Positions 16,379 through 56,395 of a stretch of DNA of 64,000 nucleotides are shown in pieces. Both the position numbers and the translations under genes were made by a program. Each line of letters starts with the position of its first letter. Position 1 is the first letter of the stretch. Location: IMG/VR virus record IMGVR_UViG_3300028883_000032, positions 62,001 through 126,000 of that record; one strand, 5' to 3'. Below the pieces are notes generated by a model. That model was not told the origin of the DNA, ran no database searches, and worked only from the letters and a program-made list of their open reading frames with translations.

Positions 16379-16388
16379 GGAATAAGAA
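16379..16388 (+). promoter_or_regulatory. Conserved GGHATAAGAW box, putative phage-specific promoter (also 17130, 39993-40002 on -, 40391, 40687, 41312, 41499, 42033, 43887, 44034, 48643, 49629, 54017, 56279)
   Basis: At least 14 copies found by eye, nearly all intergenic and each at the 5' end of an accessory gene or RNA island. Confidence 0.75.
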
Positions 16389-16391
16389 AGT

Positions 16392-16760
16392 ATGGTTAAC
16401 TTACTCGGGAGACGTAACATGTTTGCAAAGCTTGAAAGAGCACTCGGCATCAGTATTCATACTGATGATCTGCTTGAAATGGTGAAGCTCATTGAAGATG
16501 TTATCAACGATTCGGGTTACAAAACCAATTACGTTTTGTGCCTTATCAAGATTGGACGATACGTTGATACGCCATACGCCAACATTCTGGCAGCTTTTCA
16601 ATCAGTGCTTGGTGCATCAGATGCAGAGTTGATGGCTTTCGGCGATCTGCAAGCTCAACTGACGAAGCACGTCAAGACTGTCGTCTTAGACGACGTCTAC
16701 CTATGCAAGTACTGCAATTATGGTCTTGAACACCCATTCCCGTTACATAATCAAAATTAA
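16392..16760 (+). CDS. hypothetical island protein (likely start 16419)
   Basis: GGGAG SD; followed by terminator ACGGGCTTAAGCCCGT-TTTT. Confidence 0.7.
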   Translation: MVNLLGRRNMFAKLERALGISIHTDDLLEMVKLIEDVINDSGYKTNYVLCLIKIGRYVDTPYANILAAFQSVLGASDAELMAFGDLQAQLTKHVKTVVLDDVYLCKYCNYGLEHPFPLHNQN

Positions 16761-16783
16761 GATTACGGGCTTAAGCCCGTTTT

Positions 16784-17116
16784 TTAGTAGTCCTGTTTAC
16801 CGTTATTGTCACGTTCTGGGATATCTTTAATTGATCCCTTGCCATGACGTTTTTCATGGTCTTTAGCCATCTTCTTTGCAATACGCGGATGTGTTGCAAA
16901 CATATAACGTTGCTGGGCTTTTGACTCAAATCCAAGCTTTTTCAAAGATGTTTTTTTCTTCTTTTTAGAATGGGATAATCCGCATTCTCCATGTTTTTTA
17001 AAGTATTCCACCTGTTGTAACCTCTTTATTGCGTGTGATCTGTGTTCATATGGTCCGCCAAGATTTTTACCCAAGCGGGAAACAACATAGTAACCATCTT
17101 TTCTTTTAACTATCAT
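16784..17116 (-). CDS. Small basic two-module virion-type protein
   Basis: MIVKRKDGYYVVS..GKNLGGPY..AIKRLQQVEYFK plus FESKAQQRYMFATHPRIAK, both motifs familiar from phage small proteins. Confidence 0.7.
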   Translation of the reverse strand: MIVKRKDGYYVVSRLGKNLGGPYEHRSHAIKRLQQVEYFKKHGECGLSHSKKKKKTSLKKLGFESKAQQRYMFATHPRIAKKMAKDHEKRHGKGSIKDIPERDNNGKQDY

Positions 17117-17167
17117 AAAGCACCTTTATGGCATAAGATTGTGTAACCTAACTTTAGGAGAAGAATT

Positions 17168-17254
17168 ATGCCTCGTGGAGACGGAACGGGTCCTGACGGA
17201 AAAGGACCACGGACGGGCAGAGGTACGGGAACGTGCCCCCCAGTAAAAAAATAA
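17168..17254 (+). CDS. DUF5320-like micro-protein (28 aa, not in ORF track)
   Basis: AGGAG SD; MPRGDGTGPDGKGPRTGRGTGTCPPVKK matches the MPxGDGTGP..GP.TGRG.G.C pattern. Confidence 0.8.
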   Translation: MPRGDGTGPDGKGPRTGRGTGTCPPVKK

Positions 17255-17263
17255 CGGTATGAC

Positions 17264-17486
17264 AGGTCCACGTGTGTTAAGTCTCAGAAGGCAGAGCTGC
17301 CCTATCCTAGGAATTGGGGTGGAGCCGTGTGCACGGGATCCGGCTTTCGAGCCTTCGCGACCCCTACGAGTAGCGAAGGACAAGGCTCGCATCAAAACGC
17401 AGTGCAAATCCACGGACACTACAGTGGACTTATCGCCCCACGTTGGGGCAACCGCCAAACAAGGTACTTCGGTGCCTTGTTTTTTT
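17264..17486 (+). ncRNA. Structured ncRNA candidate, possibly 6S-like, with terminator
   Basis: GC-rich and ORF-poor; closing stem AGGTCCAC/GTGGACTT, inner stems CGAGCC/GGCTCG and CCTTCGC/GCGAAGG, cUUCGg terminator. Confidence 0.55.
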
Positions 17487-53999: not shown

Positions 54000-54063
54000 T
54001 ATTTGCTCTCCATTTTGGAATAAGAATATAGCAGCATATCATACAACCCCAGGAGGTAGAGAC

Positions 54064-54588
54064 ATGGTATTGGCATTGCTTATTATTGGCGCCCTGCTCC
54101 TTCTGGGAGCGGGTATTGGTTTCAGTAAAGAGTTTCATAGATACGTGTCAACTATGATACTCCTAGGTGTCATGTTGGCCTCTGTGTATCTGGCCATTCT
54201 TGGTACCATTGCGTATCAAAAAGAGTCCCTGCTATCCATGAATGACAATACCGTGGAGGCCATCAAAGTAATAATAAATACCATACCACAAGACGCATAC
54301 ATTGATAGTTCTTTTGTTATTCATGTAGCTGAAGACTATCCTGATAATATCGCCGAGGCACTTCAAGCCGCGGTTCTTGAGTACAAAACTCGAGAAAAAA
54401 TACTTGATAAAATGGAATCACCAGTACCAATAATATTCCCTTGGATACTACCCTCAAGAAATAGTGCCTCTATAATTATACATAAAGGTGATGCTGATTT
54501 CAATGCTAACTCACCATCTATTCCCCCAACTCCACTAGAAAACGTAACACAAGATACATGTGGCAAGTTAGATCAAAGTTTCCGGTGA
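54064..54588 (+). CDS. Island membrane protein (two N-terminal TM helices)
   Basis: GGAATAAGAA box at 54017, AGGAGG SD. Confidence 0.75.
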   Translation: MVLALLIIGALLLLGAGIGFSKEFHRYVSTMILLGVMLASVYLAILGTIAYQKESLLSMNDNTVEAIKVIINTIPQDAYIDSSFVIHVAEDYPDNIAEALQAAVLEYKTREKILDKMESPVPIIFPWILPSRNSASIIIHKGDADFNANSPSIPPTPLENVTQDTCGKLDQSFR

Positions 54589-55150
54589 CTTCTGCCCCAA
54601 CCCTCTAGGGTTGGGGATAGGCCTCGGAGGTCCTCCCAGAAGCGTGTACCCCGATCCTTGGATTGGTCTCGCCAATTTAAGAGGCGGAAGATCGCCCAGA
54701 CACTGGGAAATGGGGTTAGAATCCCCGCTTGCCTCACCATCGGGAAGTAGCTCAGGTCCGTAAGAGCACCACCCAACGGGGGTGGAGGTCCTTGGTTCAA
54801 ATCCAAGCTTCCCGGCAATACCACCATCGTGGGTGAAAAGCCCACTACAACCAGCAGTATGGCACCGTGTGGAACTTAGTGAAGCAGGGTGTCATTAACA
54901 TACTAGTGTCGATGACGTGCCGATAAGCATGCAATGGTAGACCCCCTACCGTCTGTCATTGTGTGGAATAACGGTGACATCCTAATACCAGTTATAAAGC
55001 CAGCTGGGGCAACACTAGTAACGACTCCCAGACCACAATGGCCTTAATACTGATGCCGGACCAGATTCGGTGGTTGATCATCGAGGTCGCGCTACCACAG
55101 TTTAAGCCTCCCGGACGTGAGTCGACCGGGTGTGGGGTAGGAAAACTCCC
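54589..55150 (+). ncRNA. Large ornate structured RNA candidate with tRNA-like modules
   Basis: GC-rich, no credible ORF, more than 12 helices, crossing long-range pairings, complementary loops TACTAGTGT (54901) and ACACTAGTA (55012). Confidence 0.65.
54741..54815 (+). tRNA. Atypical tRNA-Pro-like element with aberrant anticodon loop CAACGGG
   Basis: CGGGAAG/CTTCCCG acceptor, GCTC/GAGC D stem, CCACC/GGTGG stem, CTTGG-TTCAAAT-CCAAG; lacks U33, D-loop GG and adjacent CCA. Confidence 0.6.
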
Positions 55151-55156
55151 ATGTTT

Positions 55157-55191
55157 CGCCCTCTTCGCACATTGTGCGGAAAGGGCGTTTT
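55157..55191 (+). terminator. Intrinsic terminator ending RNA island
   Basis: CGCCCT..TTCGCAC-ATT-GTGCGGAA..AGGGCG-TTTT. Confidence 0.75.
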
Positions 55192-55501
55192 ATTTAGCCC
55201 TAATTTTCCTTACTTCTTCTCGTACACGGTAGAATGTTAGTAGTTCTTCGTATTGTTCTGCGTCTACCCCGAGGAACTCTATAAGATTTTCTTGTGTTTC
55301 TGCCCACTCCAAGAGTTTTTGGGGAGTAATCTCGTCTCCACTAGGAGTACAGATGGGTATGGTTACAATGTCATCCCTGTCCCTATCTCTATACATCTTT
55401 AGAGCTTGTTCGACTACCCAACTTTTGGTTTGATAGTTGTCAGTAACCGAGTCTAACCAGTCACTTAAGCTATCACTTAATGTTATTGTGTGTCTAGCCA
55501 T
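55190..55501 (-). CDS. Ribbon-helix-helix DNA-binding protein
   Basis: MARHTITLSDSLSDWLDSV..TKSWVVEQAL. Confidence 0.7.
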   Translation of the reverse strand: MARHTITLSDSLSDWLDSVTDNYQTKSWVVEQALKMYRDRDRDDIVTIPICTPSGDEITPQKLLEWAETQENLIEFLGVDAEQYEELLTFYRVREEVRKIRAK

Positions 55502-55628
55502 GACTCGCACAGAAGGAAGTAATCCATTTTTCTATCAAAGCAGACATACTATACCCGTGTTCTTTACATACTGCCCTGAATGTTGCCATGATCTCTTTTG
55601 ATACAGAGAAGTTAACTCGTATTTTCAT
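55494..55628 (-). CDS. Ribbon-helix-helix micro-protein (44 aa, not in ORF track)
   Basis: GAGG SD; MKIRVNFSVSKEIMATFRAVCKEHGYSMSALIEKWITSFCASHG. Confidence 0.75.
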   Translation of the reverse strand: MKIRVNFSVSKEIMATFRAVCKEHGYSMSALIEKWITSFCASHG

Positions 55629-56004
55629 TTTTTCCTCAAAAGTTTTGTTGGGTAGTGCTAACGTGCACACCCATGTTTAAATATACACAATAATATGTCA
55701 TAAGTCAAGTATGAACCCCTGTTTACTTTCCAGGATAACAGATGAATGCTAATAAATTTGAAGTACGTATTTTTCCCCCGAAAAGAAATTGGGGAGGGAA
55801 AACCATATCATTACGGCCATACGGAACTATACCCCCAAATTCGTACTATGGTACAAAGCCATACCAGACTGCGATAATGCAAAGAGGGTTAACCTCAAAA
55901 CGAAGAGCTTGGAAAAAAAGAAAGGCCTCTTCCGGGAAAAATACTACCTTTCCCGTAAACAAGCTTCGAGGCTCTATATCCCGCATCAGTAAAGGGGCTC
56001 AGCG

Positions 56005-56395
56005 ACTTTTACTACCGCTTTACTACTTTTAAAAATTAGTTGGGTAGTAGCGGAACTACGCGTCAGCACTACACTTGAGCCCATTTGACTACTTTACTAC
56101 CCGGAATTCTCTAGACACATTACTGGGAAATTATCATAAATGTGTATACATACACACTTTTCAAATCTCACGCGATGTATCTAGTGAAAAAAAGCGGTAG
56201 TAAAGTAGTAATGTTGTTATTTAATAACTTACATTATTATTTATTTATTTATTTATTTATTTATTTATTATGTATTTAGGTATAAGATAAAAAGGGTTTA
56301 AGTTCTGTATTTATAAAAACTTAAAGTTTTACTACCGCAAAAAGTAGTTTTTCGGTAGTATTTTTCAAAAAAAGGTAGTATTTTTAAAAAAGGTG
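56005..56395. repeat. Iteron-like TACTAC repeats plus (TTTA)n AT tract; origin-like region
   Basis: TACTACCGC/TACTACTTT copies at 56010, 56021, 56088-56100, inverted at 56191-56210, 56330-56380; TTTA tandem about 56234-56269. Confidence 0.6.

Follow-up and report, generated by a model that had tools for sequence, protein, structure and literature searches.

We describe here a short sequence element, GGHATAAGAW (hereafter, the box), that recurs in a 64,000-nucleotide window of phage DNA (the whole stretch analyzed, bases 62001-126000 of IMG/VR contig UViG_3300028883_000032) and whose reading as a promoter is well supported by its sequence context. Joining overlapping loci, with zero mismatches in the overlaps, gave a circular sequence of 206,727 bp; coordinates marked "contig" refer to this whole genome and all others to the window. 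The genome, with a mean guanine-plus-cytosine (G+C) content of 40%, belongs to a myovirus-like phage with genes for terminase, capsid, sheath, portal, DNA polymerase I, ligase, and helicase. Its capsid, tail, and portal modules and its RNA polymerase gene lie on the minus strand. The plus strand carries nearly all other genes, among them 28 transfer RNA (tRNA)-type genes, a transfer-messenger RNA (tmRNA) gene, and nicotinamide adenine dinucleotide (NAD)-salvage, sugar-modification, nucleotide, and RNA-repair genes.

The window contains 14 exact copies of the box (13 plus-strand and one minus-strand, 39993-40002), whereas dinucleotide-preserving shuffles averaged 1.08 copies and never had more than 4. 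This agrees exactly with the positions, and with the expectation of about one copy, given in an earlier sequence-only reading of this DNA. Variants with one mismatch were found at chance level (25 further matches versus about 30 expected), implying a sharp, nondegenerate motif. Position 10 can differ from A or T: a 15th copy, GGAATAAGAC (60815-60824, plus strand), lies in the same kind of context at the 3' end of gene 60553-60828. All 14 copies are intergenic or placed on a stop codon.

On the plus strand, the first box, GGAATAAGAA (16379-16388), heads a gene for 113 amino acids (16419-16760) followed by a hairpin and T-run at about 16764-16785. The second, GGCATAAGAT (17130-17139), heads an open reading frame (ORF) of 28 codons (17168-17254) and then the noncoding candidate A. 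The sole minus-strand copy in the window heads an ORF for a membrane protein of 54 amino acids (39964-39800), closed by a hairpin plus T-run at 39818-39792. The remaining boxes are on the plus strand. The box at 40391-40400 heads a gene for an 86-amino-acid protein with two transmembrane segments (40433-40693), the TAA stop codon of which is overlapped by the box at 40687-40696, heading candidate B. Candidates C and D follow the boxes at 41312-41321 and 42033-42042, and the box at 41499-41508 heads the gene of a 148-amino-acid protein with multiple transmembrane segments (41544-41990; terminator, 41995-42016). In a divergent gap beside the start of a minus-strand gene at 43868, the box at 43887-43896 heads candidate E, and that at 44034-44043 heads the gene of a 132-amino-acid protein (44087-44485). 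The box at 48643-48652 heads 48683-48922 and 48915-49595, the latter with a CxxCxxCC domain, and stands back-to-back with a minus-strand TTGACA-type promoter of a gene for 608 amino acids, a layout also found in a relative (locus L007). Following a terminator, the box at 49629-49638 heads 49673-50398, whose product has two helix-turn-helix (HTH) motifs, and 50388-50903, whose product has a HAD_SAK_2 RNA-repair-type domain; this unit ends with a terminator at 50902-50919. Finally, the box at 54017-54026 heads the gene of a 174-amino-acid membrane protein (54064-54588) with a noncoding tail, F, of about 600 nucleotides, and the box at 56279-56288, located after a (TTTA)n tract, heads a long plus-strand operon from 56401 onward.

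Most of these units are thus short cassettes bounded by terminators and situated between late operons of the opposite strand. About half of them encode small membrane or DNA-binding proteins, in line with the small membrane or regulatory proteins that the sequence-only reading had proposed. Its claim that each copy heads a terminator-ended unit held for about 12 of the 14, which are closed by a hairpin plus T-run; the box at 40391 runs into the next box, and that at 56279 heads the long operon. Four terminators were detected by a scan for intrinsic terminators (41471-41491, 41995-42016, 50902-50919, and 39818-39792), and the others were recognized from folds and sequence. Since the region-wide count of hairpins with T-runs was not above that of shuffles (18 versus 14.5), the evidence lies in their placement and not in their number. 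The same reading had the units lying mostly antisense to late genes. They occupy intergenic gaps and do not overlap these genes, so they are opposite in orientation and do not constitute antisense transcripts.

Genome-wide, the core GGHATAAGA occurs 40 times, with 39 copies on the plus strand, whereas about 6.4 are expected (3.8 and 2.6 by strand in shuffles). Hence the box is not special to islands inserted into the virion operon, as had been supposed, but appears as a general plus-strand promoter, also preceding tRNA, NAD-salvage, nucleotide, and RNA-repair genes. Only 6 of the 40 copies fall within crude ORF calls of at least 100 amino acids (binomial P about 1e-15), several of these calls being visibly spurious or having mis-set starts, and an equal frequency in coding regions, which would have spoken against a promoter, is not found. 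By comparison, GGHATAAG followed by a base other than A at position 9 occurs on both strands and, in 7 of 14 cases, inside large genes, as by chance.

Alignment of the 40 sites gave the consensus WWTWT-GGHATAAGA-w-w-r-T-R, with a conserved T-purine at box positions 13 and 14 and a purine at position 14 in 38 of the 40 copies; the N-GT-R tail suggested previously was therefore roughly right, although the consensus is w-w-r-T-R. The stretch from -50 to -6 carries no information content except for an A/T-rich pentamer immediately upstream of the box, and thus no -35 information, in line with the single-box element that had been predicted. A -35-like TTGTCA upstream of two boxes was considered and rejected as part of the box; it is the reverse complement of a divergent TTGACA promoter. 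Where a gene follows directly, the distance from box to start codon is typically 30 to 45 nucleotides, and a run of at least five T within 35 nucleotides upstream of 17 of the 40 boxes represents the terminator of the preceding unit. Orientation relative to the downstream gene is fixed in all 40 copies.

This placement also bears on whether the box is a promoter at all. Its strict conservation over 9 nucleotides is operator-like and HTH proteins are encoded in box-headed units, so that it could be imagined as a binding site of a phage regulator, such as the HTH protein encoded at 49673-50398, or as a DNA signal for packaging or replication. However, the fixed orientation, the fixed distance to ribosome-binding sites, the position just after terminators and before stable-RNA genes, the -10-like composition, the pyrimidine-purine start motif, and the nonpalindromic sequence make such a role very hard to credit.

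No close relative of the phage was found in any collection, and a megablast search with the island cluster against 50,697 phage records returned no match; other assemblies with this phage are 100% identical to it. A sequence-run search identified a DNA run labeled marine sediment metagenome that carries the window sequence and may be the source of the assembly. Relatives were found through protein comparison and not through nucleotide search. The nearest cultured phage is Salmonella phage Arash (OQ632216), followed by Vibrio phages D148, D181, and D69. Terminase, capsid, portal, helicase, RNA polymerase, and both lineages of sigma factors described below are common to the Arash/Vibrio phages and this phage, at 23-42% protein identity.

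Relatives in which the box is conserved share 23-48% protein identity overall. In three that were found through the 608-amino-acid protein (28-47% identity), the box is enriched and correctly oriented before genes, with 8 copies in L002, 6 in L004, and 2 in L007. Relatives found through the polymerase (40-48% identity; L023-L029) have 1-9 copies each, and in five of these loci a box stands back-to-back with the start of the polymerase gene. About 33 copies of GGTATAAG-taaaGTGTAA occur in the Arash genome (53% G+C), almost all of them before leftward genes and tRNA clusters. In Vibrio phage D148, GGHATAAG is not enriched and the corresponding version is TGTTATAAG-(T/A)AA-TATGTA, which implies that the box is akin to extended -10 promoters.

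Indeed, the box resembles extended -10 elements of the TGnTATAAT type in lacking a -35 element, in having G at -14 and A at -11, and in its spacing to a predicted purine start, and the sigma factor that is our candidate reader has its region 3 best kept. It differs from them in that this phage and Arash have GG where TG is usual, position -12 is free (H), -7 is G and not T, and almost no variation is tolerated. In view of this likeness, clearest in D148, and of two generic bacterial features, a purine at the predicted +1 and an upstream stretch rich in A/T, the box might be regarded as an unusual extended -10 promoter read by a primary or alternative sigma factor of the host with no phage factor involved. 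We consider this improbable. The core is kept in phages of Salmonella, Vibrio, and unknown hosts with genomes of 29-53% G+C, implying that the reader should travel with the phage and be phage-encoded. Unlike in host promoters, one-mismatch variants are not enriched, and the G at -7 replaces the base on which sigma70 depends most, as is established for -10 recognition by sigma70 (see also PMC7598289). Moreover, all these phages carry an RNA polymerase of their own, and Arash and this phage also carry two sigma factors.

A search of the genome for a phage-encoded polymerase, which the sequence-only reading had put forward as one possible reader, yielded a fused beta-beta' RNA polymerase of 2,046 amino acids (contig 153631-159768, minus strand; located along the reassembled contig) as well as the two sigma factors. 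The Pfam domains Rpb2_3, Rpb2_6, Rpb1_1, Rpb1_2, Rpb1_4, and Rpb1_5 are united in this single ORF, whose Arash homologues are gp206 and gp216; the beta subunit of Arash shares 57-59% identity with rpoB-like proteins of cells. When the Arash polymerase was used to query a large protein index, no contig of this phage was among the best 120 of 1,238 matches. Window proteins of 607 and 608 amino acids were examined as possible polymerase subunits and rejected, the former matching Laminin_G_3 and the latter no family. In L023 and L025, the longest ORF across the matched part of the polymerase has 377 and 484 codons, respectively, versus 2,014-2,445 in the other relatives; these two may use another genetic code or have a split polymerase gene.

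The first sigma factor (sigma 1), encoded at 5465-6268 on the plus strand of the window, is SigA-like, comprises regions 1.2, 2, 3, and 4, and matches solved SigA structures with an expectation value (E) of 3e-54. It retains the RERxRQ motif for contact with -35 as well as the -12 contacts, but lacks two residues linked to extended -10 recognition (H455 to N and E458 to A). Its Arash counterpart is gp196. The second (sigma 2; contig 184109-184888, minus strand) is a divergent sigma70-family protein whose gene lies within a module of virion genes and whose Arash homologue is gp10 (E 1.7e-27). Its region 3 is best kept (E 3.7e-11), its region 4 is weak, and residues in region 2.4 are changed.

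The genome also has a second promoter class, with the consensus aCTTGAC(A/T)-N16-18-TATA(T/C)T, typically TTGACA-N17-TATATT, and with near-consensus copies on the minus strand. The copy ahead of the 608-amino-acid gene has an N18 spacer (48602-48631, minus strand), and sequence search located others on the same strand at 16343-16371, 26282-26310, 29303-29330, 36507-36535, and 55680-55708. In the window, such promoters precede the tail-sheath, capsid, and 608-amino-acid operons. Beyond it, they were found before the homologues of the 608-amino-acid gene in three relatives, before the polymerase gene in this phage and in four relatives, and before the 25-kb virion module containing the sigma 2 gene.

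The TTGACA class is missing from Arash, and no region 4 was detected in its gp196. Arash late genes (e.g., gp185, gp204, gp212, gp216, and gp241) show a (C/T)TAAAAT box 20 to 40 nucleotides before the start codon, and several of the CTAAAAT boxes are back-to-back with the reverse complement of GGTATAAG. With this CTAAAAT box, a cultured phage has a second class of promoters that has not been described; the paper on Arash contains no promoter analysis (PMC10585845). Between the two lineages compared, the sigma 1 lineage thus varies with the type of late promoter, while the box, like the sigma 2 lineage, is conserved. Retention of RERxRQ and of the -12 contacts likewise matches sigma 1 to the TTGACA-type class.

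Taken together, we favor, with a probability of about 0.62, the reading of the box as a -35-less core promoter of the extended -10 type, which defines a plus-strand regulon and for which the phage polymerase, equipped with the divergent sigma 2, would be the reader. GG-HATAAG-A would then span -14 to -6, and the T-purine 4 nucleotides past the 10-nucleotide box would be the start. In purified Arash virions, mass spectrometry found gp206, the most abundant protein, along with gp216 and gp10, whereas gp196 is not in the list (PMC10585845). In this phage, the polymerase gene is present and packaging has been seen only for the Arash homologues; delivery of its polymerase and sigma 2 with the virion is suggested because those homologues occur in virions. 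If the Arash data hold here, polymerase and sigma 2 would be injected together and fire the boxes first. Products of the box class would include sigma 1, which would then activate the TTGACA-N17-TATATT promoters of the minus-strand virion genes, and this late class would also remake polymerase and sigma 2 for packaging. An Arash-style variant box, GGTATAAGTA, is located at 4206-4215, just before ORF 4219-4428 and a tRNA-Cys gene and 1.2 kb upstream of the sigma 1 gene; it may be the route by which the box class switches on this SigA-like factor. We infer the reader and the start site from sequence features, and the early timing and virion delivery by analogy with Arash.

The roles could also be distributed differently. 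TTGACA and TATATT form a near-perfect host-type consensus readable by any primary sigma factor, and promoters of this type precede tRNA-Thr and some plus-strand genes, so that the host sigma70-type holoenzyme might read this class and sigma 1 or another phage factor the box, making the box class middle or late. In that case, infection would begin with the host enzyme already transcribing the capsid, sheath, portal-module, and polymerase genes. In addition, sigma 1, with canonical -35 and -12 contacts and its extended -10 contacts lost, appears ill suited to a -35-less GG-HATAAG box, and Arash combines the box with a gp196 lacking a detectable region 4 and with no TTGACA class. We therefore regard this arrangement as unlikely and retain sigma 2 as the preferred reader of the box.

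Several observations weigh against the preferred reading. While A at -11 is invariant, G occupies -7 in all 40 copies, in conflict with a -10 hexamer with T at this position, and the upstream GG differs from the classical TGn: directly before the hexamer in this phage and Arash, agreement is limited to the G at -14, and D148 has TGT. The assignment of promoter classes to sigma factors is based on residue comparison and on covariation over two lineages only. The Arash authors point out that enzymes in virion preparations could be carry-over (PMC10585845). TTGACA-type promoters also occur on the plus strand, before tRNA-Thr, some plus-strand genes, and, in tandem with a box, the tmRNA gene, so the two classes are not cleanly split by strand. 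The proposed order would be upset if TTGACA promoters were already read by host polymerase at time zero, which is conceivable. No RNA run matched when a 4.7-kb stretch was compared with RNA runs, or a 1-kb stretch with runs of any kind, and the RNA candidates in the window have no covariation support because homologues are lacking.

Promoters of a comparable kind have been described in phiKZ, AR9, and their relatives, polymerase-encoding jumbo phages in which a conserved box of roughly 10 nucleotides at -10 marks early promoters (PMC7598289), these being transcribed by a multisubunit RNA polymerase packaged in the virion. The likeness consists in a highly conserved, A/T-rich single box of about 10 nucleotides near -10, placed before many short nonstructural units, and in a phage-encoded polymerase of the multisubunit type. 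However, the polymerase of these phages consists of four or five split, highly divergent subunits, in contrast to the single beta-beta' fusion, close to bacterial enzymes, found here. phiKZ-like phages also lack sigma factors (PMC7824862, PMC13282480), in contrast to the two sigma70-family genes of this phage, which belongs to a different lineage and has a different box sequence. Reviews of jumbo phages set phages with their own sigma-less split polymerase against phages that supply sigma factors to the host enzyme, and those up to 2026 describe no phage with its own core enzyme plus sigma factors (PMC7824862, PMC13282480). The genome studied here and its relatives do both. A literature text search for the motif strings retrieved only unrelated papers among the matches listed.

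Arash shares with this phage the same box family before the same kind of genes and differs by a polymerase split into gp206 and gp216, a box of the form GGTATAAGTAAAGTGTAA, the late motif CTAAAAT, and the missing TTGACA class. In phage SPO1, gp28 and then gp33/34 act as successive sigma factors, and T4 employs gp55 with a single-box late promoter, TATAAATA, an 8-nucleotide -10 box. Phage-encoded sigma factors defining successive promoter classes and, in T4, the single -10 box are features in common. In SPO1 and T4, however, the host core is redirected, whereas this phage has its own core; here the single-box class drives nonstructural genes and the canonical -35/-10 class structural genes, and the T4 late box differs in sequence from GGHATAAGA.

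If the proposed assignment is correct, the box would constitute a readable promoter code, making two regulons of Arash-like phages predictable from sequence alone, and Arash would provide a cultured model for testing it. A sigma70-family factor accepting G at -7 would also be of mechanistic interest. Furthermore, the box may serve as a finder of phage noncoding RNA genes, since it flags the tmRNA, tRNAs, and at least five unclassified candidates for structured RNAs in the window.

These candidates, all on the plus strand, belong to predicted box-driven transcripts without ORFs that are 115-600 nucleotides long, G+C rich, and hairpin rich. Candidate A (17255-17487; 56% G+C; minimum free energy z-score, -2.9) ends with a terminator at 17463-17487. 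Candidate B (40701-40896; 51% G+C; z, -4.2) ends with a long 3' hairpin followed by a T-run, and candidate C (41326-41498; z, -2.3) with a terminator at 41471-41491 and a run of seven T abutting the next box. Five hairpins are predicted in candidate D (42047-42210; 50% G+C; z, -4.1), the last of them being the terminator at about 42181-42207. Candidate E (43901-44015; z, -3.0) is one long hairpin followed by TTTTT and the next box. Tail F (54589-55195) combines a minihelix, a tRNA-Arg gene, a structured stretch of 340 nucleotides, and a terminator at about 55157-55195. No credible ORF was found in A-F in any frame, even with any one stop codon reassigned; in candidate C, a weak ribosome-binding site precedes an ORF of 23 codons. 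The noncoding nature of the islands claimed by the sequence-only reading was borne out to this extent, with the modifications that the island near 17264 follows the 28-codon ORF and that the one at 54589 contains a tRNA gene.

The idea that some box-headed units yield RNA and not protein has firm examples. tRNA-Arg(ACG) (54741-54816; RF00005, 50 bits) lies in the unit headed by the box at 54017. The tmRNA gene (contig 150804-151169, plus strand, equal to L022:13671-14036, minus strand; RF00023, 111.8 bits, E 9e-43), encoding the tag GETPVLKAA, starts 61 nucleotides past the box at contig 150733, and an odd tRNA-like gene is located downstream of the box at contig 162645. Thus, box-headed units without ORFs can be RNA genes.

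Candidates A-E are probably functional RNAs. An alternative, which seems possible though doubtful to us, is that the islands are leaders, spacers, terminator modules, decayed genes, or carriers of micropeptides, whose transcription would merely reflect the promoter in front of them. A-E match no Rfam family at gathering score, their best matches with E up to 5 being at chance level, and blastn (word size 7) with islands A-G revealed no homologue in relatives, no paralogue in the genome, and no similarity among each other. Terminator hairpins supply part of the folding signal, and the short ORF of candidate C could specify a micropeptide. Furthermore, box-terminator modules can be nearly empty: at contig 165205-165258 on the plus strand, a box is followed after 8 nucleotides by a 7-bp hairpin with a T-run and then by a second box. 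Against this stand the composition and folding of the islands, with A-F having 45-58% G+C compared to the genomic 40% and z-scores of -2.1 to -4.2 compared to -0.23 +/- 1.07 in 24 coding controls and -2.5 in the phage's own tmRNA, as well as the private box and terminator of every island and the confirmed tmRNA and tRNA-Arg genes behind boxes.

Phage T4 produces stable small RNAs, species 1 and 2, which are cotranscribed with tRNA genes, and huge phages carry tmRNA genes. The candidates resemble these as structured phage RNAs of 100-400 nucleotides whose promoters are their own or shared and whose genome abounds in tRNA and RNA-repair genes. They differ in that A-E match none of the families described and that every one of them comes with a promoter and terminator of its own. 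A more far-reaching idea, which we offer tentatively as a minority view, is that an uncharacterized clade of large phages, comprising Arash, D148-like Vibrio phages, and many metagenomic relatives, possesses a complete bacterial-style transcription system with a beta-beta' core, fused or split, and two sigma factors, of which one is virion-delivered and reads a -35-less G-nATAAG promoter with G at -7. In this phage, that promoter would launch a dozen or more private units for structured RNAs outside all known families as an RNA arsenal. If true, such an arsenal would, alongside tmRNA, target host translation, RNA repair, or defense systems. A decoy, takeover, or anti-defense role of the window RNAs, as put forward in the sequence-only reading, is pure speculation.

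Two further observations concern the surroundings of the RNA candidates. The 28-codon ORF preceding candidate A (MPRGDGTGP...) matches only the first 26 positions of DUF5320 (E 5e-8), a family found typically in anaerobes; the remainder of the domain is missing, with the structured noncoding stretch in its place. Abutting the 5' end of tRNA-Arg in tail F, 54681-54735 forms a weak minihelix resembling tRNA (mascRNA-like, E 2.2), which includes a T-arm and ends in ACCA.

Around the box at 56279, window positions 55640-56390 hold at least 10 copies of TACTACC/GGTAGTA in both orientations plus the (TTTA)n tract. This segment coincides with a strand switch and the minimum of the cumulative GC skew, and its iteron-like repeats might mark an origin or regulator sites.

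Elsewhere in the genome, a protein with a Por_Secre_tail domain for type IX secretion system sorting (contig about 5762-7027; loci L038 and L036) hints at a Bacteroidota host, yet the genes have strong Shine-Dalgarno sites. The same two loci hold a 17-kb block of glycosyltransferase, methyltransferase, and dTDP-sugar genes (contig 9.8-27 kb). An RNA and nucleotide toolkit (L034, L039, L015, and L018) comprises a CCA-adding enzyme, Thg1, two RNA ligases, NAPRTase, NMNAT, NAD synthase, and NADAR, and these loci also encode two Apyc1-like (anti-Pycsar) metallo-beta-lactamase proteins and JAB plus ThiF pairs. An amber-suppressor tRNA gene (anticodon CUA) is located at contig 4202-4275 on the plus strand. 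Stop codon recoding in this phage was nevertheless rejected because TAG ends 21% of the called genes genome-wide; no TAG-interrupted ORF pairs were seen in it. Finally, a group I intron (Rfam, 71 bits) is present at contig 9346-9605 on the plus strand (L039:15551-15810), downstream of the box at contig 8604 and beside a minus-strand ORF of 178 amino acids.

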